Shown here: piece by piece, positions 8,109 to 20,228 of the stretch
Position numbering within the stretch: the stretch's first letter is position 1
Layout: each line of letters starts with the position of its first letter
From: Perkinsela sp. CCAP 1560/9
Lineage: Eukaryota > Protista > Euglenozoa: Kinetoplastea
Direction of reading: 5' to 3'
Length of the DNA stretch: 20,228 nt
Assembly (NCBI GenBank): GCA_965644495.1
Contig: CBFFSA010000102.1
Span: 1-20,228 of the forward strand
Position numbers and translations under genes: made by a program
The notes under the pieces: generated by a model
Seen by the model: the letters and a program-made list of their open reading frames with translations, nothing else
What the model was told of the DNA's origin: nothing
Databases searched by the model: none

Positions 8109-8263
8109 GACGAAGGAAGGAAAAAAATCGAGTACAGTGCGGGGCTTTATTACGGGGACGGGTTAATTAATGGACACCCCCTTAAACCCGTCCCTTAATT
8201 CTCCATTTTGTTTTCTAAGAATCTCTATACCTTTTTCTTTCAATTATCTTCCTTTACTTTTTG

Positions 8264-11200
8264 ACCATCTTTTTGTTAAGACCATCTTTTTGTTAAGACC
8301 ATCTTTTTGTTAAGACCATCTTTTTGTTAAGACCATCTTTTTGTTAAGACCATCTTTTTGTTAAGACCATCTTTTGTTTAAGACCATCTTTTTGTTAAGA
8401 CCATCTTTTTGTTAAGACCATCTTTTTGTTAAGACCATCTTTTTGTTAAGACCATCTTTTTGTTAAGACCATCTTTTTGTTAAGACCATCTTTTTGTTAA
8501 GACCATCTTTTTGTTAAGACCATCTTTTTGTTAAGACCATCTTTTTGTTAAGACCATCTTTTTGTTAAGACCATCTTTTTGTTAAGACCATCTTTTTGTT
8601 AAGACCATCTTTTTGTTAAGACCATCTTTTTGTTAAGACCATCTTTTTGTTAAGACCATCTTTTTGTTAAGACCATCTTTTTGTTAAGACCATCTTTTTG
8701 TTAAGACCATCTTTTTGTTAAGACCATCTTTTTGTTAAGACCATCTTTTTGTTAAGACCATCTTTTTGTTAAGACCATCTTTTTGTTAAGACCATCTTTT
8801 TGTTAAGACCATCTTTTTGTTAAGACCATCTTTTTGTTAAGACCATCTTTTTGTTAAGACCATCTTTTTGTTAAGACCATCTTTTTGTTAAGACCATCTT
8901 TTTGTTAAGACCATCTTTTTGTTAAGACCATCTTTTTGTTAAGACCATCTTTTTGTTAAGACCATCTTTTTGTTAAGACCATCTTTTTGTTAAGACCATC
9001 TTTTTGTTAAGACCATCTTTTTGTTAAGACCATCTTTTTGTTAAGACCATCTTTTTGTTAAGACCATCTTTTTGTTAAGACCATCTTTTTGTTAAGACCA
9101 TCTTTTTGTTAAGACCATCTTTTTGTTAAGACCATCTTTTTGTTAAGACCATCTTTTTGTTAAGACCATCTTTTTGTTAAGACCATCTTTTTGTTAAGAC
9201 CATCTTTTTGTTAAGACCATCTTTTTGTTAAGACCATCTTTTTGTTAAGACCATCTTTTTGTTAAGACCATCTTTTTGTTAAGACCATCTTTTTGTTAAG
9301 ACCATCTTTTTGTTAAGACCATCTTTTTGTTAAGACCATCTTTTTGTTAAGACCATCTTTTTGTTAAGACCATCTTTTTGTTAAGACCATCTTTTTGTTA
9401 AGACCATCTTTTTGTTAAGACCATCTTTTTGTTAAGACCATCTTTTTGTTAAGACCATCTTTTTGTTAAGACCATCTTTTTGTTAAGACCATCTTTTTGT
9501 TAAGACCATCTTTTTGTTAAGACCATCTTTTTGTTAAGACCATCTTTTTGTTAAGACCATCTTTTTGTTAAGACCATCTTTTTGTTAAGACCATCTTTTT
9601 GTTAAGACCATCTTTTTGTTAAGACCATCTTTTTGTTAAGACCATCTTTTTGTTAAGACCATCTTTTTGTTAAGACCATCTTTTTGTTAAGACCATCTTT
9701 TTGTTAAGACCATCTTTTTGTTAAGACCATCTTTTTGTTAAGACCATCTTTTTGTTAAGACCATCTTTTTGTTAAGACCATCTTTTTGTTAAGACCATCT
9801 TTTTGTTAAGACCATCTTTTTGTTAAGACCATCTTTTTGTTAAGACCATCTTTTTGTTAAGACCATCTTTTTGTTAAGACCATCTTTTTGTTAAGACCAT
9901 CTTTTTGTTAAGACCATCTTTTTGTTAAGACCATCTTTTTGTTAAGACCATCTTTTTGTTAAGACCATCTTTTTGTTAAGACCATCTTTTTGTTAAGACC
10001 ATCTTTTTGTTAAGACCATCTTTTTGTTAAGACCATCTTTTTGTTAAGACCATCTTTTTGTTAAGACCATCTTTTTGTTAAGACCATCTTTTTGTTAAGA
10101 CCATCTTTTTGTTAAGACCATCTTTTTGTTAAGACCATCTTTTTGTTAAGACCATCTTTTTGTTAAGACCATCTTTTTGTTAAGACCATCTTTTTGTTAA
10201 GACCATCTTTTTGTTAAGACCATCTTTTTGTTAAGACCATCTTTTTGTTAAGACCATCTTTTTGTTAAGACCATCTTTTTGTTAAGACCATCTTTTTGTT
10301 AAGACCATCTTTTTGTTAAGACCATCTTTTTGTTAAGACCATCTTTTTGTTAAGACCATCTTTTTGTTAAGACCATCTTTTTGTTAAGACCATCTTTTTG
10401 TTAAGACCATCTTTTTGTTAAGACCATCTTTTTGTTAAGACCATCTTTTTGTTAAGACCATCTTTTTGTTAAGACCATCTTTTTGTTAAGACCATCTTTT
10501 TGTTAAGACCATCTTTTTGTTAAGACCATCTTTTTGTTAAGACCATCTTTTTGTTAAGACCATCTTTTTGTTAAGACCATCTTTTTGTTAAGACCATCTT
10601 TTTGTTAAGACCATCTTTTTGTTAAGACCATCTTTTTGTTAAGACCATCTTTTTGTTAAGACCATCTTTTTGTTAAGACCATCTTTTTGTTAAGACCATC
10701 TTTTTGTTAAGACCATCTTTTTGTTAAGACCATCTTTTTGTTAAGACCATCTTTTTGTTAAGACCATCTTTTTGTTAAGACCATCTTTTTGTTAAGACCA
10801 TCTTTTTGTTAAGACCATCTTTTTGTTAAGACCATCTTTTTGTTAAGACCATCTTTTTGTTAAGACCATCTTTTTGTTAAGACCATCTTTTTGTTAAGAC
10901 CATCTTTTTGTTAAGACCATCTTTTTGTTAAGACCATCTTTTTGTTAAGACCATCTTTTTGTTAAGACCATCTTTTTGTTAAGACCATCTTTTTGTTAAG
11001 ACCATCTTTTTGTTAAGACCATCTTTTTGTTAAGACCATCTTTTTGTTAAGACCATCTTTTTGTTAAGACCATCTTTTTGTTAAGACCATCTTTTTGTTA
11101 AGACCATCTTTTTGTTAAGACCATCTTTTTGTTAAGACCATCTTTTTGTTAAGACCATCTTTTTGTTAAGACCATCTTTTTGTTAAGACCATCTTTTTGT

Positions 11201-11577
11201 TAAGACCATCTTTTTGTTAAGACCATCTTTTTGTTAAGACCATCTTTTTGTTAAGACCATCTTTTTGTTAAGACCATCTTTTTGTTAAGACCATCTTTTT
11301 GTTAAGACCATCTTTTTGTTAAGACCATCTTTTTGTTAAGACCATCTTTTTGTTAAGACCATCTTTTTGTTAAGACCATCTTTTTGTTAAGACCATCTTT
11401 TTGTTAAGACCATCTTTTTGTTAAGACCATCTTTTTGTTAAGACCATCTTTTTGTTAAGACCATCTTTTTGTTAAGACCATCTTTTGTTAAGACCATCTT
11501 TTTGTTAAGACCATCTTTTTGTTAAGACCATCTTTTTGTTAAGACCATCTTTTTGTTAAGACCATCTTTTTGTTAAG
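8264..11577 (+). repeat. Tandem array of 195 x 17-bp ACCATCTTTTTGTTAAG
   Basis: 3314 bp, equal to 195 units with one 16-bp unit (~11480). One other variant unit is seen (~8375). The array ends 11 nt before the ATG at 11589. Confidence 0.98.
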
Positions 11578-11588
11578 ATTTTAACAAA

Positions 11589-14500
11589 ATGACGACGGAT
11601 GCGTCCGGTGCGGTCGAGGTGCGCGTTGTTCGCGAACGTCTCGATCGTTCCACGCTTGGTCGGGGCTCTCTTTTTCTGCCGCCTATTCCGGTTGAAAATA
11701 AGGGCGCAAAACTCCGTCGCAGTGCGTTATCAAGTCTCATGCGCTGGATGCGTAGAGGTTGCCATATTGCAGTCGTATGGCGGTATGATGGTTCTCGGAA
11801 ATACCGACTATGGGAGGGAGATGTTATGGGAAACTTTGAGGATACTGATCGCTTCAGCGTGAAGTATCATCAAAGAGCTGACCTGGTGTTTCCCTTCCCC
11901 CCCATTTCCGCAAGATTTATCATATGCGCTGTTCGAATGAGATCGGCTCCCTCCCGGCGTAAGAGGCGATGGCGTCGCTGCGCTACCAAATCGACGTCGC
12001 CCGGCGAGCATGTCGATCGCGCTTTGGAGAACCAAAATGGTTCGGCTGTGAAGGAGAAGTTGTCGATAGCGACCCTGAATGTGACCTCATTAAAATTAGA
12101 GGGGGGGGATTTGTTTTCTATTCGATCGTGTGTCCGATTGAAGGAAATATTGAACCTTATGAGTAGCAAGAGGATTCACATACTGGGGTTGCAGGAAACG
12201 AGGTTCCGTTTTGATTCTCGTCTCTTTGGTGAGATTCTACGTCAGCAAACGGAGGACACCGGCGTTACGTATTACTTATATTTTTCCTCAGCAACGTCCG
12301 ACCGTTCTTACAACGGAATGGCGCTCGTTAGTACTTTTCCATTGGAAAAGGTGCGGGTTATCTCAGAACGGATTATGACTGCACAGTTTCCTTGGGAAAA
12401 CGGGAACGCTACACTATTCAATGTGTACGGTCCCATTAGGGATTCTTCTAAGGAAATGAAATCTACCTTCGACGCTTCTTTAAGAAAGGCCGTTCGCGAT
12501 CTTGAATCCACGAACCCCCAACGACCTACGATCTTAATTGGAGATTTTAATTCCCCTTTAACGCTGGTCAACAAAACTGCTGAAGACAAAGCAGCTGTAG
12601 CACGATTTCGCGCCTTACTTGTAGACGTTGGTTGCAAGTCTGCCCACACTCTCTCACCAAGCTCTCGAAAGTGGACTTGTAAACTTCCCAATGGCGCTGA
12701 GAGACAACTAGATCATATTATAATTTCCAATCGATACGCGTCAGCAATACAACATCATAAAGTTTTACTTGCTCCTTTCCCAACGCAGCACTGCTCGGTT
12801 GTCACCCGTCTCAAGATTAAGTGGAAAGCGCATGAAACACAACCTGGCAATCATTTGCCATGGTACAACCTAAAATCAGAAAATATTTGCAAGGAATTCA
12901 ATAAATGTACCCAACAAGCTGTTTTCAAAGTAATCGGAGAGGGAAGACCCGACCCGTGGGAGGTTTTATCAGAGGGGATACTATATGCGGCACAGAAAAC
13001 ACTTCCGGATTTCGAGGCACCAAGTGACTTAAGTAAATCCAATGGGCAACGAGAAGAAACAAACAAACAAGAGGAAATATTATCACTCAGCGCCCTGTAC
13101 AAATCTAGTCGAAATGCGCATACATTCAAAGGTCTTGTAGACAAGAGTCGTGAGCAAATTGAGGAAACAATTGAAGCTGAATGTGCAATTCTCCAAGAAA
13201 AACTACGGAAAAACCATTCCAGCCCTTGGAGATTCATTCGCGAAATATGCGGAATGAGGAAAACAGTTTTTAATTATGGCGCAGGTCAATCAAACCGGAA
13301 ACGACTAGCAGCCGTTAAGGACTTTTTCTCTAAAATTGCTAACCGAGGTGTTGGAGACACAAAAGTTGAATTTGATGAGACCAAAAACTTTGAAGGAGAA
13401 ATCATGGATTCACCTTTCACAGAAGATGAACTTGCATGCGCTGCGCGTAGACTTAAACGAGGAAAAGCTCCAGGACTCGACGAGATACCAGCGGAAGCGT
13501 ACATATCCATACTCGAAGAAAATTCTTTACGCCATCTCCTTCTTGGAATCATCAACAAAGCCCTTGAAACGGGAAAGACGCACCATCTCTGGAAAACCGT
13601 TCTGCAAGTCCCCGTACCGAAAAAAGGTGATCTTTCCGAGCTGCGGAATTGGCGCCCAATATGTCTTGTCAACGTTATCCTCAAGCTAATTAACGGTATG
13701 ATTTTGAATCGTATTCGGCCCTCGACCGAGCGAGTTCTACGCGAAAATCAATATGGTTTCCGCCCGGAGAGGTCCACCTGTGGAGCCCAAATTATTCTCA
13801 ATGAAATCCTCACGAAATCAAGACGGAATCGAAGTCACGAAAATGTCATGATTGCTTTCATCGACTTCGCGAGTGCCTTTCCATCGCTTTCACACTCATC
13901 TATCAGGGCAGCGTTACATTCGTTCCACGTAGGACCTCGAATGACAACCCTTGCAATGTCGGCCTACGAGGGCTTAGAGGCCATTGTACGTACCCCGTTT
14001 GGGAAAACCAGCTCCTTTCCTATTACCTCGGGTATTTTGCAAGGGGATGTGCTGGCTCCGTATTTATTTATCATGGTTCTCGATCGCATCCTTCACGCGG
14101 CATTGAAAAATAAAGATGATGGACTAACGCTGAGCTCCGCCGGAACCAGAAAACGTGGATATAAATCAACACGAGTGACTGATATTGATTACGCTGATGA
14201 TTTGATCCTGTTTTCCGACTCCAAACGTTCATTAGAAAGGATGGTCGACAGCGTCGCTACTGAAGCATCCAAAGCTAATTTGAGTATAGCCGCTGGTGTC
14301 AACAAAACGGCATGGATGTCCATCTCGAAGAATGAGAATAAGGATGGCGATCTCCTTTCATCAACTTGTGGGAACATTCCGAAAGTAAAATCGTACCGCC
14401 ATCTGGGGCATGTTCAGCATGAAACCGAGCCTAAATTAACATTAACCGACAGATTACGTTTGACGTGGGCGTGTTTTAGCAAACTACGAGGTATTTGGAT

Positions 14501-15749
14501 CTCGCCTCTTCGCGTAAAGGCTAAGCTTCGAATTTTTGACACCCTTGTCTATCCCATACTAAACTACGGTACGTCATCCATGGTGATATCGGCATCGCAG
14601 GTGAGAAACGTTGAAGTACAGGTAAACAACATGAGGCGCATCGTGTGTGACGCCGTAGGAGTTGATGAGAATGGGCATTGTTATCCTATTGAATCTCTGT
14701 ACCACAACACGCTACATTTCAATACAATACATCGTATTAATCGGGCGCGCCTTGTGGGTCACCAAATTAGGCACTCTGAGATCTACCGCTCTTTAGTAGG
14801 ATGGGGCTCCCGGGAAAAGGCGAGATTTCCATCGCCTTCCGAAGCATGCGCACAAGACCTTGGGATTGAGATGGAAGAAATGCTTGTATATGCCTCTGAT
14901 CGCGCACACTGGGCCAAATTAATTGAAAACCTCTCAGAGAGACTCGAGCCCTCAGAGTCTTATATTGGCTACAAAAGTCCTAAATGGAAACTAGCATACA
15001 AAAACGCTTTAAAAGAAACAGTGTGTAATAAATTACAATTTATCGAAGAAGGGGAAACCCCTTTTCCTGTAAAACCAGAGGAAATGCATGCGTACGTGGA
15101 TGCTTCTATCTCCGATGATACGGACACAAGGGTAAAGGTAGCAGTTGGATGTGTAATAGTAAACGCAGAGAAGCATGAAAGTTTTTCGTCCTCCCTATCC
15201 TACCTGGAAACCAAATCTCCTGAAAGAGCCGAAATTCACGCTGCCCTATTTGGTTTGAGTAAACTAAAAGAAGTTGAAAATGTTGTTGTACACACAGATT
15301 CGTATTATGTGTGGAATTTTGTAAATATGCGCCGAAGGAAAGATCGACTGGTTGGTTTTGAAGGCTCGAATTCCGATCTGCTTAGTTTTCTGGATAGTTT
15401 TATTCGATCAGCGCATTGTCAGGGGAGAACCATCACCTTTATTAAGGTCCGAGGCCATTCAGGGAATAAATGGAATGAAGAAGCGGATACCTTAAGTAAA
15501 AAGCTCGTTAGTTCGGAACCTATTTCTAAACGAAGAAAAAACCTGAACCGAGGAAATGAATCGGCCCACTCCGAATATGAGTGGATAGCGTGCCTTAAAA
15601 CAATAGAAAAGAAAACCACGAACCCAACCCGTGAGGAGCGTCGGATGCGGCGTAAGAGAAAAGGTAAGTTACTAGACACCGCGTCCTCGCTTGCTAACGC
15701 AGAATTTGAACAAAGCGAAAAGAAACATTTCCGAACATCCAACCTGTAA
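11589..15749 (+). CDS. Non-LTR retrotransposon polyprotein: unassigned N-terminal region + APE endonuclease + reverse transcriptase + RNase H (RTE-like, 1386 aa)
   Basis: Uninterrupted ORF. APE motifs IATLNV, LGLQETR, NVYGP, LIGDFN, LDHIII. RT motifs KAPGLDEI, KKGDL..NWRPICL, QYGFRPERS, FIDFASAF, GILQGDVLAPYLF, YADD. RNase H motifs YVDAS, RAEIHA, HTDS, KVRGHSGNKWNEEAD. Confidence 0.97.
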   Translation: MTTDASGAVEVRVVRERLDRSTLGRGSLFLPPIPVENKGAKLRRSALSSLMRWMRRGCHIAVVWRYDGSRKYRLWEGDVMGNFEDTDRFSVKYHQRADLVFPFPPISARFIICAVRMRSAPSRRKRRWRRCATKSTSPGEHVDRALENQNGSAVKEKLSIATLNVTSLKLEGGDLFSIRSCVRLKEILNLMSSKRIHILGLQETRFRFDSRLFGEILRQQTEDTGVTYYLYFSSATSDRSYNGMALVSTFPLEKVRVISERIMTAQFPWENGNATLFNVYGPIRDSSKEMKSTFDASLRKAVRDLESTNPQRPTILIGDFNSPLTLVNKTAEDKAAVARFRALLVDVGCKSAHTLSPSSRKWTCKLPNGAERQLDHIIISNRYASAIQHHKVLLAPFPTQHCSVVTRLKIKWKAHETQPGNHLPWYNLKSENICKEFNKCTQQAVFKVIGEGRPDPWEVLSEGILYAAQKTLPDFEAPSDLSKSNGQREETNKQEEILSLSALYKSSRNAHTFKGLVDKSREQIEETIEAECAILQEKLRKNHSSPWRFIREICGMRKTVFNYGAGQSNRKRLAAVKDFFSKIANRGVGDTKVEFDETKNFEGEIMDSPFTEDELACAARRLKRGKAPGLDEIPAEAYISILEENSLRHLLLGIINKALETGKTHHLWKTVLQVPVPKKGDLSELRNWRPICLVNVILKLINGMILNRIRPSTERVLRENQYGFRPERSTCGAQIILNEILTKSRRNRSHENVMIAFIDFASAFPSLSHSSIRAALHSFHVGPRMTTLAMSAYEGLEAIVRTPFGKTSSFPITSGILQGDVLAPYLFIMVLDRILHAALKNKDDGLTLSSAGTRKRGYKSTRVTDIDYADDLILFSDSKRSLERMVDSVATEASKANLSIAAGVNKTAWMSISKNENKDGDLLSSTCGNIPKVKSYRHLGHVQHETEPKLTLTDRLRLTWACFSKLRGIWISPLRVKAKLRIFDTLVYPILNYGTSSMVISASQVRNVEVQVNNMRRIVCDAVGVDENGHCYPIESLYHNTLHFNTIHRINRARLVGHQIRHSEIYRSLVGWGSREKARFPSPSEACAQDLGIEMEEMLVYASDRAHWAKLIENLSERLEPSESYIGYKSPKWKLAYKNALKETVCNKLQFIEEGETPFPVKPEEMHAYVDASISDDTDTRVKVAVGCVIVNAEKHESFSSSLSYLETKSPERAEIHAALFGLSKLKEVENVVVHTDSYYVWNFVNMRRRKDRLVGFEGSNSDLLSFLDSFIRSAHCQGRTITFIKVRGHSGNKWNEEADTLSKKLVSSEPISKRRKNLNRGNESAHSEYEWIACLKTIEKKTTNPTREERRMRRKRKGKLLDTASSLANAEFEQSEKKHFRTSNL

Positions 15750-15903
15750 ACTCAGGGGTGTACTCAAAACGAAAGTAATGGAAAAATATATCTACCAATA
15801 GGGCGCACGATGGTGTGGGAATCAAATTCTATTAGTTCTAGTTTTAGGAGCATATATTTAGTGAAGCTTGAACAGTTTCTCAATTGAAGGGTAATGCCTT
15901 CAG

Positions 15904-15927
15904 TGTTGTGTGTGTGTTGTGTGTGTG
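15904..15927 (+). repeat. (TG)n-like microsatellite 3' tail of the retrotransposon
   Basis: TGTTGTGTGTGTGTTGTGTGTGTG, ~155 nt after the stop codon and abutting the TSD. Confidence 0.8.
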
Positions 15928-16128
15928 CTTCCTTTACTTATCTTCTTTTCGTTCAGTTATCTTACAAATACACTTTGATGTGTACCTGATGACTTGCGCG
16001 CTCTGTTACTTGGGCGCTACATTCGTAGTTCTTTCGTCCCATTCCAAAGGGATGACCCCACCCCTATATTGTCCCTTAAATACCCGTCCCGTAATTAACC
16101 CGTCACGTAATTAACCCGTCACATAATA

Positions 16129-17052
16129 ATCGAGTGTAGAGCGGTAGTTTTACAACCACCGCAATATTTCTTTTTTAGTCTCTTCGTTAAACGCGGTGGT
16201 TGTTTTCAACTTAGAAGTTACTCATGCTGCGCGCTTCGCGTTGAAAACTCCCGCCGCGTTTAACGAAGAGCCTAAAAAAGAAAATTTAGCCTGGAAAACG
16301 GAAAGATTATAGCCAAAAATAGCCGAATTTCGGGTAAAAATTGGGTGATTTTCGCGTATTTTTGCTGTCAGAGCACTAAATCCGACATTTGCGCGTTGGA
16401 AATCACTCGTAGGCATGAATGGAAGCCTACCGAACGTATTGGGTAGAGAATGCGACTCCAACCATACCATTCTTTCGACACTAAAATGGCCCTTTAGGTC
16501 CGAAAAATACTTTTTCACCTTTTTTAGTCAAAAATGGGTCATTTTGAGGGGCGCACCACGGTTCGAAGAATGGATACCTTGCAAAAACAACTGCGGAGAA
16601 AGCTAGTGTAGGTCCCAAACTATTAAAATACAATAGGGGAAATGATTTTGGAAAAATATTTTTTTTGCCATTTTTTTCGCCAAGTTGAAATCTTTTTCAA
16701 ATTTTCTTTTCCGAAAAAATCCGAACTTGGAGGACCCGTCCTGCGGATACGCGGGGGGGTCACCCCCGGGTAGGGGGGTGGAAAATACGCGCCAACACCC
16801 CGGCTACCCTTTCTGCGGTTTGTTTTCGAAAACTAATTTTTTCGAAAAAATTTGCACGACCATGACCCCTCCCTGAACCCCCCCCTGGACCCCCCATTTT
16901 TTTCGATTTTTTTTTTTTGTTTTGGTCCACCGGAGCCCCCTTTTATATTTTTTTCTTCTATTATATTACTGTGTTCCTCTTTATATTTTCACTGTTTTTG
17001 TTCACTTTTTTTTCAATAATCGAGTGTAGAGCGGTAGTTTTACAACCACCGC
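16129..17052. mobile_element. Non-coding insert bounded by 34-bp direct repeats and a 16-bp TSD-like duplication
   Basis: ATCGAGTGTAGAGCGGTAGTTTTACAACCACCGC at 16129-16162 and 17019-17052. AACCCGTCACATAATA at 16113-16128 and 17053-17068. The interior (~16180-16757) matches the ~0.8-kb unit at 862-2700. Confidence 0.65.
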
Positions 17053-17827
17053 AACCCGTCACATAATAGCACCACGCACTGTAACGTATGCGATGCCCGA
17101 TCGCATATTTATTTTATCGCCTTCCCGTGCATTTCGCGTACTTTGTGCCATTGGGGGTAACGCATCGTCTGGCCCCTCAAACTGATAATCAATGTTTCTA
17201 ATGGAAGCTTTGCAAGGATGAAGGCAACCTAATCTGTTAAATGCGGCAAAAACAACATACGGACATTTTTTATAAGAACACACTTTTTATAAAGAACACA
17301 CTTTTTATAAGGAACCCAGATTGAAAGGGGCGAGGGAGATACGAAGCAACAGGCGTGGCAGATTCCCACTGAAAAGAAATGGTATCTCCCGCACGAAGTT
17401 TTTCCCCGAGCTAGAAAGCGCAAAGGCTTCTCTCGTGCGGGGAGAAAGATATAATTGAATTCATAATCAGAGATCATATGCCTCGTAGGGCCATTTGAGA
17501 AAAAGAAGTCTTTTCAAATTCGTATTTGTTCTCGTCTAAATTTCCTCTCGTAAACTATCATGGTTAAAAAATTCTCGATTCTGATATGGACGAGCATAAA
17601 AACTCGCTTTGTCCAACGAATCGTGCAGATTTGAGACGAGAGATCGCTTCTGGGGTCGAAAAATTAGAAGAGGCGCAATACGATGTATTTTTGAGGACTT
17701 TGAAGAGTGTTTCAACCTGTGTGAAAATTGTGCTGGAGAAAAAAGGTGGAAATTGTGGATACTAACTTTTTTCTTACCAGAAAAAAAACTTGCAGTTGCC
17801 CTTTTTACGGGATTCAGGAGAATGCCA

Positions 17828-18217
17828 AAAATCCAAAAAATCCAAATCATTCCGGATTGCTCCGGATGGTCACTGGCAAGCCAGACCCTTCACAGACATA
17901 TTTGGAAGTTCCGAGGCCGACGTCCTCTACCAGTTTCCGCTTGCCCAAGGCGGCACCAACGTGCTGTTGCCAACACGCTGCTTCGACGAACTGCACGTCA
18001 ACACAGCTTACCCAAGAGGTGTAAGCCGGGTAAGGGAGATGGTTCCCTGTGGGGAGGGTCCGGGACGGTCCTCCGAGTACTGGGCCTAGTCGGTTATCAG
18101 CCCAGCCTCTTAGAGTGAGGCCGCCGGGAATATTGCGATGAACGGGTTTGAACTCGCTGTCTGAGCACCATGTGCTTCAAACTTTGAATTCTTGCCACCC
18201 CGCCACCTCCGCCCTCC
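17828..18217. repeat. Inverted diverged copy of ~6080-6431 and ~5725-5891
   Basis: Reverse-complement match; ORFs 6144-6485(-) and 17609-18118(+) share the SLASQTLHR...GYQPSLLE peptide. Confidence 0.88.
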
Positions 18218-18409
18218 AGGAGAATGCATATACCTGGAAACTACGTAAAACGTTATATCACATGACACGTAACTCTGTGAGAGCTCTCGAATGCGCTATT
18301 ATTTTCCAAAATTGGCCGAGTTGTAAGAATTTTGACCCCCCCCCATAATTTCGCGCACCCCCTGTATTTACGTATCGTGCTGACGATGCTTGCAACCCAT
18401 GTCGTGCGC

Positions 18410-19039
18410 GAGCGTTTCTATTCTCCCCTTTTTTTGAACAGTCGCTCTGGAGTGGATATAGATACTCTTCTTCTAATATGGGGGGACATCGCGAACAACC
18501 TCACGACAGGGCAAATCAGTCGTAACCGTGGAGTGCGGCAAGGCACTGTCACAAAGTTCCTTCACATGGTAGGTAAAGCAGCGTTCCACCAAGAAAACAC
18601 GGATTTTAACTTTTCCAAACTGCAAGTGGATGAAACATTCATAGGAAAACGGAAATACAAACCGTGGAAAAAGGGTATAACCGTGGAAAAAGGGTCCGAA
18701 AAATAGGATGGTGGTTCGTCACGGTGACAGAAATCGATGATCAGAAAATGGGCCGAACACACTGGAAACTCGTAAAGCGCCGTGATCAAGAAACCCCTCT
18801 GAACTTTATAACCCCTCATCTAACAAGCACTCGGTCCGTCGTGGTTACGGATGAATGGCGAGGGTATTGGAATCTTGGGGATTATTTCCGGCATTTCACT
18901 GTAAACCACAGCAAGGAGTTTGTCACTATACCACTTGGGCCACCATACCAATCACGCGGAAACTGCGCATCGAACCATTAAACAATGGACGAAACAGCAA
19001 CACTACAACTATGGGGCGACACCCATGGACCTTCGGTGA
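18410..19039 (+). pseudogene. Merlin/IS1595-family DDE transposase with two frameshifts
   Basis: QVDETFIGKRKY / NRGKRVRKIGWWFV..VVTDEWRGY..VNHSKEFV / HTNHAE (18944-18961, third frame). All three catalytic motifs are present across frames. Confidence 0.88.
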
Positions 19040-19092
19040 AACGTGGCTCTCCAATGCGTCAAATATGGCTACGGAAAAACAGTAGCGAAAGC

Positions 19093-19325
19093 CAGCTCGC
19101 CACCCTTCCACAACATGGCCAGCTGGCCACCCTTCCACAACATGGCCAGCTGGCCACCAAAAAAAAAAAAAAAAAATGGCCAGCTGGCCACCCTTCCACA
19201 AATTGGCCACTTCTAAAACATGGTCACTTCCACAACATGGCCACTTCCAAAACATGGTCACTTCCACAACATGGCCAGCTGGCCACCCTTCCACAACATG
19301 GCCAGCTGGCCACTCTTCCACAACA
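19093..19325 (+). repeat. 27-bp minisatellite CAGCTGGCCACCCTTCCACAACATGGC with shorter variants and an A-run
   Basis: Direct tandem copies just downstream of the Merlin coding region. Confidence 0.88.
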
Positions 19326-19371
19326 CTCTCCCACCCCCGTGGGACTCACTCAGTGGACTCACCCAACGTGA

Positions 19372-19771
19372 GTCACTGCCCCACGTGGCAGTACACTTAC
19401 TCTCTCACGTGCCACTGTATCTACACTGCAGTCGCTGCCTCACGTGACACTTCTCTTACTCTCGCACGTGCCAATGCAGCTGCACTGCGATCACTGCCTC
19501 ACGTGGCAGTACTCTCACTCTCTCACGTGCCACTGTAGCTACACTGCAGTCACTGACTCTCTCACATTCCACTGTATCTACACTGCAGTCACTTCCCCAC
19601 GTGGCAGTACTCTCACTCTCTCAGGCGCTACTGCAGCTACACTGCAGTCACTGCCTCACGTGGCAGTACTCTCACTCTCTCACGTGCTACTGCAGCTACA
19701 CTGCAGTCACTGCCTCACGTGGCAGTACTCTCACTCTCTCGCGTGCTAGTGCAGCTGCACTGCATCACTGC
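19372..19771 (+). repeat. ~59-bp diverged minisatellite (~7 units) rich in CACGTG and CTGCAG palindromes
   Basis: Unit TCACTGCCTCACGTGGCAGTACTCTCACTCTCTCACGTGCCACTGTAGCTACACTGCAG. Confidence 0.88.
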
Positions 19772-19772
19772 A

Positions 19773-19937
19773 TAAGACCATCGTTTTTTGTAAGACCATC
19801 GTTTTTTGTAAGACCATCGTTTTTTATAAGACCATCGTTTTTTGTAAGACCATCGTTTTTTGTAAGACCATCGTTTTTTGTAAGACCATCGTTTTTTGTA
19901 AGACCATCGTTTTTTGTAAGACCATCGTTTTTTGTAA
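19773..19937 (+). repeat. Tandem array of 9 x 18-bp ACCATCGTTTTTTGTAAG
   Basis: Direct count; the third unit has a G>A variant. It shares the TAAGACCATC junction core and the T-run with the 17-mer array. Confidence 0.97.
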
Positions 19938-19952
19938 TCTAATTATAAAAAC

Positions 19953-20228
19953 ATGGCGGATGCTTCCGGCACGTGTAAGGGGACAGAGGTTTTTGAAACC
20001 CTTACACGGACCAAGCGTGGTCGGGGGGTCATCTTTCGTTCACCCGAGCGAGAGGGGCCTGCTAAACTCCGCCAGAGGGCGGTGCGGGCGCTCTGTAAGT
20101 TTGTCCGCGTTGGGGCTCATCTTCGCGTCGCGTGGAGACACGACAACTGTTGCGACACTTTGTTTGTTTGGGAGGACGAGGTCGTGTGTGAGGGGCCGGC
20201 TTATCTGAAAAGCGTAGGCTGGCATACT
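19953..20228 (+). CDS. N-terminus of a second, related retrotransposon ORF (runs off the window end)
   Basis: Hand translation is open for 92 codons: MADASGTCKGTEVFETLTRTKRGRGVIFRSPEREGPAKLRQRAVRALCKFVRVGAHLRVAWRHDNCCDTLFVWEDEV... About 30 of ~80 residues match the N-terminus of 11589-15749 (DASG, GRG, AKLR, GxHxxVxWRxD, WE). Confidence 0.85.
   Translation, partial: MADASGTCKGTEVFETLTRTKRGRGVIFRSPEREGPAKLRQRAVRALCKFVRVGAHLRVAWRHDNCCDTLFVWEDEVVCEGPAYLKSVGWHT

Follow-up and report, generated by a model that had tools for sequence, protein, structure and literature searches.

The 5' ends of mouse L1 elements of the A, Tf and Gf types carry tandem monomers of ~200 bp that act as Pol II promoters; the outermost monomer is often truncated, and how units are regained is unclear. 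Short tandem repeats also adjoin the LINEs SART, TRAS and Waldo, for which the repeat is the insertion target and lies on both sides of the element, outside the target-site duplication (TSD), while SVA and LAVA elements carry 5' hexamer and VNTR arrays of unstable length that lie inside the TSD. The structure of LAVA has been described (PMC5174737). Among kinetoplastid LINEs, L1Tc and ingi have a single 77-nt promoter (Pr77), unspliced transcripts and an A-rich tail (PMC1874656). Dinoflagellate retrogenes tagged with a spliced leader (SL) carry tandem relict SLs, with the SL added once per cycle (PMC5585692, PMC6050394), and are the only comparable link between trans-splicing and retroposition found in the literature searched (PMC5585692). 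Ordinary promoters lie upstream of the RNA start, yet it is through this RNA copy that every LINE must pass on its expression signal; where all mRNAs are SL trans-spliced there is a matching problem, namely that splicing removes the acceptor.

Here we describe a LINE that carries a long array of very short units at its 5' end. The window analysed, 20,228 nucleotides of DNA, is the complete contig C102 of a genome of 21 Mb in 110 contigs (features are listed in Table 1). The element is an APE-type non-LTR retrotransposon with RNase H, assigned to this class because an AP-endonuclease and an RT share one ORF, its TSDs are variable, 5'-truncated copies exist and the 3' tail is a simple repeat. 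Pfam matches to the ORF are Exo_endo_phos (9e-10), RVT_1 (1e-29) and RNase_H (7e-16), and no named ingi or L1Tc protein is among its 24 homolog matches. An Rfam search of the window returned zero matches and no ribozyme. The array itself was reproduced as an earlier, sequence-only reading of this DNA had described it, a near-perfect tandem array of 195 copies of a 17-mer with two variants: unit starts in the contig assembly span 8263 to 11560, 192 units read GACCATCTTTTTGTTAA, and the variants are one T/G transposition and one 16-mer that lacks a T. After the last unit come GA and a further ten bases, which lead directly to the ATG.

Table 1. Features of the window element and of the related element downstream.
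Feature	Position	Strand	Remarks
Left target-site duplication CTTCCTTTACTT	8248..8259	+	Abuts the 5' side of the element
Three extra T at the 5' junction	8260..8262	+	Neither target nor unit sequence
195 tandem 17-nt units, then GA	8263..11578	+	T-run in each unit, AG at each joint
Last unit plus inverted part-unit (TTTTAACAAA)	11560..11588	+	Predicted hairpin up to the AUG
Single ORF, 1386 aa	11589..15749	+	APE ~12132-12731, RT ~13614-14408, RNase H ~15078-15503
3' UTR, 153 nt	15750..15902	+	
TG-rich simple-repeat tail	15903..15927	+	Length differs among copies
Right target-site duplication CTTCCTTTACTT	15928..15939	+	Abuts the TG tail
Family B, second related LINE: 9 x 18-nt units plus linker	19776..19952	+	Units at 19776-19937
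Family-B ORF start	19953..20228	+	Continues beyond the window end

The boundaries of the insertion place the array within it. The sequence-only reading had held that the array lies inside a 12-bp duplication and came in with the element, and both points stand: the two copies of CTTCCTTTACTT enclose array, ORF and TG tail, and a pair of this kind would abut the element at both ends by chance with a probability of ~7e-6. The window flanks are the two halves of a ~350-bp repeat whose ends are inverted. An empty-site paralog on C18 (L056) runs contiguously across the junction with one 12-mer carrying one mismatch, and holds neither array nor LINE, which bears on the question, raised by the same reading, of whether empty sites already contain the array. 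Genome-wide, the dimer of the unit occurs 657 times, all within the 5' arrays of this LINE family and in four short runs of 2-7 units; this census found no long array of the window unit without the element, and therefore no free satellite was available as an insertion target. A pre-existing satellite target was thus ruled out by the array-free paralog together with the absence of long solo arrays. It had also been stated that no unit lies 3' of the element, which is correct for the exact unit but not for related ones, since the family-B array (Table 1) and three units of a third type, at 17263-17315, lie downstream. C1 holds a second copy of the last 5.2 kb of the window, in which only the final 0.9 kb of the element precedes this 3' junction; C102 may be a haplotig or may represent one side of a rearrangement, and its own flanks and duplication still match the empty-site paralog.

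Across the genome, the pattern of the array/ORF junction located eight 5'-intact copies of the window family. Array length, which the sequence-only reading had suggested tabulating, runs from 1 to 341 units in these eight: 341 in C52 (244 + 97, interrupted by an antisense retroelement that is nested there and flanked by a separate 9-bp duplication), 195 in the window, 83 in C22, 22 in C2, 18 in C65, two in C11 (from the pattern match alone), and one each in C8 and in C1:1467016, which is headed by an SL. The loci known by pattern match alone are C11:637516, C7:23967, C16:222869, C17:151211, C1:2381714, C20, C32, C33 and C37. Four of the eight 5'-intact copies have clear TSDs of their own; those around array plus tail read AGTGTCTA in C65, CCAGAACCT in C52 and CGTTACTA in C8, and TSD length is 8-12 bp across C102, C65, C52, C8, L007 and L008. 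A partial first unit abuts the TSD in both C65 and C52. Copies truncated at the 5' end were found as well (L007-L015), and L007, L008 and others adjoin their duplication without any unit. The run sizes for the window unit, 341, 195, 83, 22, 18, 7, 3, 3, 2, 2, 1 and 1, match the outcome expected when long parental arrays are truncated again and again.

Over 4329 nt of body sequence, C102, C22 and C2 are 1-2 nt apart, yet their arrays hold 195, 83 and 22 units. The 16-mer variant is common to C102 and C22, where it lies 5 and 4 units, respectively, from the 3' end of the array, and therefore at least the proximal units were inherited through RNA in this pair. Unit number shifts fast, and one-unit slips occur too, as the comparison of C102 with C22 shows. 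In C52 the variant stands 66 units from the array 3' end, and C65 and C2 are without it; we therefore dropped the shared 16-mer as a general proof of inheritance, and it is informative for C102 and C22 alone. That C2 does not carry a variant unit common to its sisters C102 and C22 counts against the inheritance account. The window array looks like an inherited, length-unstable part of a young LINE.

The architecture recurs in related families at 44-59% amino acid identity, each of which has its own unit of 17-19 nt straight upstream of the conserved ORF start: GACCATCGTTTTTTGTAA in family B, GACCAACTTTTTGTTTA in family C, GATCAAGTTTTTTGTAA, with or without one further A, in family D, GATCAACCTTTTTATTAA in family E and GAACACACTTTTTATAAA in family H. 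Arrays in these families reach at least 86 units, many exceeding the 1.5 kb of flank examined; long arrays are usual in families D and E, and single-unit copies occur as well (L014, L026 and L027). A metagenomic relative at 32% identity, L061, has six 18-nt units at its start, running up to the ATG, while metagenomic contig L060 has a single unit before the P0003 ORF and, at another place, seven tandem copies of a similar unit. What is constant across unit types is a run of 4-7 T and, 3-6 bases on, an AG made by the joint of two units. In all nine cases tested (9/9), an A-rich, inverted part-unit whose end lies 0-3 nt short of the AUG is predicted to pair with the T-run of the last unit. The predicted stems are 8-11 bp long, with G-C/A-U exchanges among families, and the z-scores of the hairpins are modest because the sequence is A/U-rich.

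Two copies connect the units to trans-splicing. The head of C1:1467016 is a stretch of 37 nt that also heads unrelated sequences in L010 and L014; its last bases, ACAGTTTCTGTACCTTGTTG, closely match the spliced leader of kinetoplastids, and we take it to be the SL. None of the papers searched contains the SL string. A pattern count finds the SL core 499 times, dispersed through the genome. In C1:1467016 a single unit is kept, and the SL runs straight into ACCATC..., the junction lying immediately behind the inter-unit AG. The second SL-headed copy, C20:50733, is family-B-like, with a unit type that forms arrays on C32 and C37; it also keeps one unit, and its junction falls one base earlier than the AG-exact position. 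Both junctions thus lie within the first two positions of a 17-18-nt unit, for which the chance is ~0.013. Only these two SL-headed copies were found, one of them with its junction a base off the AG, and the window copy has no SL at its head. A third candidate, C33:69911, in which an SL precedes a unit-like 17-mer, was set aside since the downstream sequence is not the ORF start of the clade. We also considered the units as SL relics in the dinoflagellate style, given that the family-D unit resembles the SL core by eye, and rejected this because neither unit length nor the SL junctions fit a relic series. Because the SL is joined at a unit joint in two copies that keep one unit each, we conclude from these sequences that the unit joints probably serve as SL trans-splice acceptors. 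The mature mRNA would then probably consist of the SL and the last unit, with the U-run held in the predicted hairpin. Most array-bearing copies are without an SL, and therefore the usual template for retroposition is not the mature mRNA.

The positions at which element 5' ends fall within the unit point the same way with respect to the template. Across families, the 5' junction could be read in 15 cases; 9 of these (as many as 11 if two ambiguous ones are included) are at unit positions 1-3, where 17% would be expected (p ~2e-4). These unit-start ends include SL-less copies with 43, 59 and 195 units, some with an extra G or T. Since 5' ends are in unit phase in SL-less copies with long arrays as well, most templates must have ended 5' at a unit start far upstream in the array. 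Such an end could reflect transcription that can start at every unit, RNA processing, or the point at which reiterated copying stopped.

Taken together, the data lead us to favor, with moderate confidence, a reading in which an active APE-RT-RNaseH LINE of a kinetoplastid-like protist has the array built into its 5' end as a heritable module, with the units acting as SL acceptors. It starts from the observations that the array lies inside the insertion, varies in length and occurs clade-wide, that the SL is found at a unit joint, and that 5' ends are unit-phased. The array would be co-transcribed with the element, and each 17-nt unit would supply a short U-run, the AG of the SL acceptor being formed where it meets the following unit. 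The U-run of the last unit would be paired with the inverted part-unit just upstream of the AUG, so that one unit stays in the mRNA. Reiteration of acceptors may leave a working acceptor in copies made from processed or truncated RNA, just as the monomers of mouse L1 preserve a promoter, and 5' truncation or downstream 5' ends would give new copies shorter arrays. Truncation alone would erode the arrays, and a growth step is therefore required; some process would have to lengthen them again.

How that step might work bears on the mechanism proposed in the sequence-only reading, in which the RT reiteratively copies the 5' end of an RNA holding one or two units. The copies speak against this mechanism. 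Were repeats added to any RNA end, units would be expected on 5'-truncated copies; none of these carries one, and the TSD is adjoined directly. Nor do copies that reach the unit-phase RNA end necessarily have many units, as C8, L026, L027 and L014 each have one, C8 within the clean TSD CGTTACTA, and the SL-headed copies likewise have just one; the variant inherited between C102 and C22 is a further point against it. A related possibility is template switching by the RT, in which cDNA that has reached a unit-start, possibly capped, RNA end would re-pair with a unit, either in that RNA or in a second element RNA, and be extended, rebuilding arrays lost by splicing or truncation. A growth step of this kind is logically needed, unit-phased 5' ends are the residue it would be expected to leave, and 5' template jumps are seen in other retroelements of this genome (L024). 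Family D provides a hint that growth could take place distally, in the course of reverse transcription: L016 and L019 have 19 and 13 proximal 18-mers, respectively, followed distally by homogeneous blocks of 17-mers (65-72 or more), with the difference between the two forms lying precisely at the unit joint. The single odd unit of L019 lies at the block boundary, with a G where a cap-templated base would fall, and the family-D body tree, ((L017,L019),L018),L016, disagrees with the array types, L017 showing 18-mers only. Against this, unequal exchange or replication slippage would also yield block patterns, the boundary G may be a point mutation and marks a single seam, the RNase H of the element should remove the copied template, the truncated copies are unit-free, and the TSD-flanked single-unit copies mean that reiteration is not obligatory. 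We regard template switching as an unlikely, if the most viable, alternative account of the arrays.

A somewhat less likely alternative is that the units are reiterated mini-promoters or initiators, with transcription starting at any unit and the SL-joined copies arising as by-products of ordinary mRNA maturation. The long SL-less copies that begin at unit positions 1-3, some with the extra G or T that capped ends would show, fit this idea, and the internal 5' promoter of L1Tc yields unspliced transcripts (PMC1874656). However, it is the T-run and the AG that are conserved among unit types, with no initiator-like motif. The mini-promoter reading is compatible with the acceptor-module reading and the two are not exclusive. 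A transcribed monomer promoter had been offered as an alternative in the sequence-only reading as well; its transcribed monomer array comes closer to the data, but the units appear to serve SL addition.

We consider it improbable that elements insert with one or a few units and that the arrays later expand through DNA-level processes alone, whether replication slippage or unequal sister exchange. Perfect 17-bp arrays are indeed prone to slippage, and C22 has one unit fewer than C102 on the 3' side of the variant they share; but with bodies only 1-2 nt apart in 4.3 kb, tens to hundreds of units would need to have been gained almost instantly, the partial first units at the TSDs of C65 and C52 fit truncation of a longer RNA, and families D and E typically have long arrays. 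That array length is an assembly artefact is very improbable, for although long perfect repeats assemble poorly and C102 is a short contig whose 3' ~5 kb are duplicated in C1, several arrays, of differing length, have unique flanking sequence in their contigs and TSDs that match, and variant units occupy defined places.

We found no description of 5' acceptor arrays in LINEs in the literature searched. The empty site, the copy census, the SL junctions, the conserved predicted hairpin and the phase bias of 5' ends are contributed by the present analysis. On the acceptor-module reading, a tandem acceptor array combined with a unit-retaining hairpin would be a previously undescribed answer to the problem of carrying an expression signal through RNA, in parallel to the monomers of mouse L1. 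The arrays offer a compact, naturally occurring system for studying how kinetoplastids choose acceptors and, as they must regrow, a concrete place to look for RT-driven repeat expansion.

Compared with known systems, the locus resembles telomerase and DRT2 (PMC12039810) in outcome only, in that a long head-to-tail array of short units is tied to an RT; unlike in those systems, arrays here are confined to copies whose parent RNA could have contained them already, and a dedicated template or cyclic copying is unsupported. As with SART, TRAS and Waldo, a LINE adjoins a short tandem repeat, but here the array is inside the TSD, on one side only and absent from the empty site. With SVA and LAVA it shares 5' simple repeats that are unstable in length and enclosed by the TSD; those elements, unlike the window LINE, are non-autonomous, and we know of no splice-acceptor role or hairpin for their repeats. 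Like L1Tc and ingi, it is a kinetoplastid APE-RT-RNaseH LINE with its own 5' expression signal inside the element, whereas the 10-12 nt between array and ATG leave no room for Pr77 and the tail is TG-rich. The dinoflagellate retrogenes share with it the copying of trans-spliced RNA into DNA, an SL at the head of the copy and 5' repeats tied to repeated splicing; their repeat is an SL relic, in contrast to the repeat here, which appears to be an acceptor module that is not SL-derived. By analogy, the 5' architecture of the window element appears to work most like the monomers of mouse L1: in both, tandem 5' units of variable number lie inside the TSD and would carry the expression signal of the next generation, while the units here are 17-19 nt long, number up to 341, probably serve SL trans-splicing and end at the AUG in a predicted hairpin with an inverted part-unit.

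The repeat that hosts the insertion of the main LINE of the window (family A) occurs in numerous diverged copies and lies in two parts on either side of the element (see the table). The LINE copy on another contig, C8 (locus L006), is interrupted by one copy of the MITE-like palindromic repeat.

Features of the window and of locus L032, with their positions
Feature	Location	Description
Insertion host repeat, two parts	window 8133-8259 and 15928-16129	~350 bp, inverted ends, GGGACGGGTTAATTA-type
MITE-like palindromic repeat	window 16167-16283	>80 genome copies, near-identical
Three family-H-like units	window 17263-17315	resemblance to family-H unit
Nested complex tandem repeats	window 19091-19771	periods of 27, 59, 98 and 157 nt
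Second LINE, related family (B)	window 19776-20228	~45% aa identity; contig ends within element
Antisense RT element, 5'-truncated, 2.35 kb	L032 5987-8339 (contig C52)	inside 341-unit array

The antisense RT element nested in the C52 array is bordered on both sides by duplicated unit sequence of 9 bp (TTTTGTTAA), and the 3' flank of the family-A copy on C2 (L003, C2:958438-965595) directly abuts an inverted array of the related family C; this C2 copy, which has no recognisable TSD, is a LINE beside or within the 5' array of another LINE.

The 5' part of the family-B LINE consists of nine 18-nt units followed by a 15-nt linker, with the ORF starting at 19953; the nested tandem repeats lie directly upstream of its array. 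This family-B locus is also present in contig C1 (L028), where the 3' 5.2 kb of the window (15021-20228) is duplicated at 1425627-1430834 with 99.9% identity. The C1 duplicate contains the LINE body only from position 15021 on, the sequence upstream being unrelated; the duplication may reflect a haplotig, rearrangement or misjoin. Neither a linker nor an ORF start lies behind the three family-H-like units, which represent either an isolated remnant or an element that has been decapitated.

At oriented position ~5720-5780 of L024, the head of another retroelement comprises a 3'-cut part of the spliced leader (SL) and then a nearly full SL, an arrangement suggestive of template jumping at the 5' end of the RNA. 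Genome-wide, the SL 3' end is followed by GTACATTTTGCTAGC or GTACATTTTCCCTTT at ~60 dispersed sites, which represent either SL RNA genes scattered over the genome or a further pair of SL-headed repeat families. A 35%-identity relative on the metagenome contig that encodes the protein homolog P0001 (L058, 1-130) starts with an SL-like sequence, ACAGTTTCTGTAATTTATTG, that belongs to another euglenozoan, so copies of this LINE clade with an SL at their head are not confined to the Perkinsela genome.
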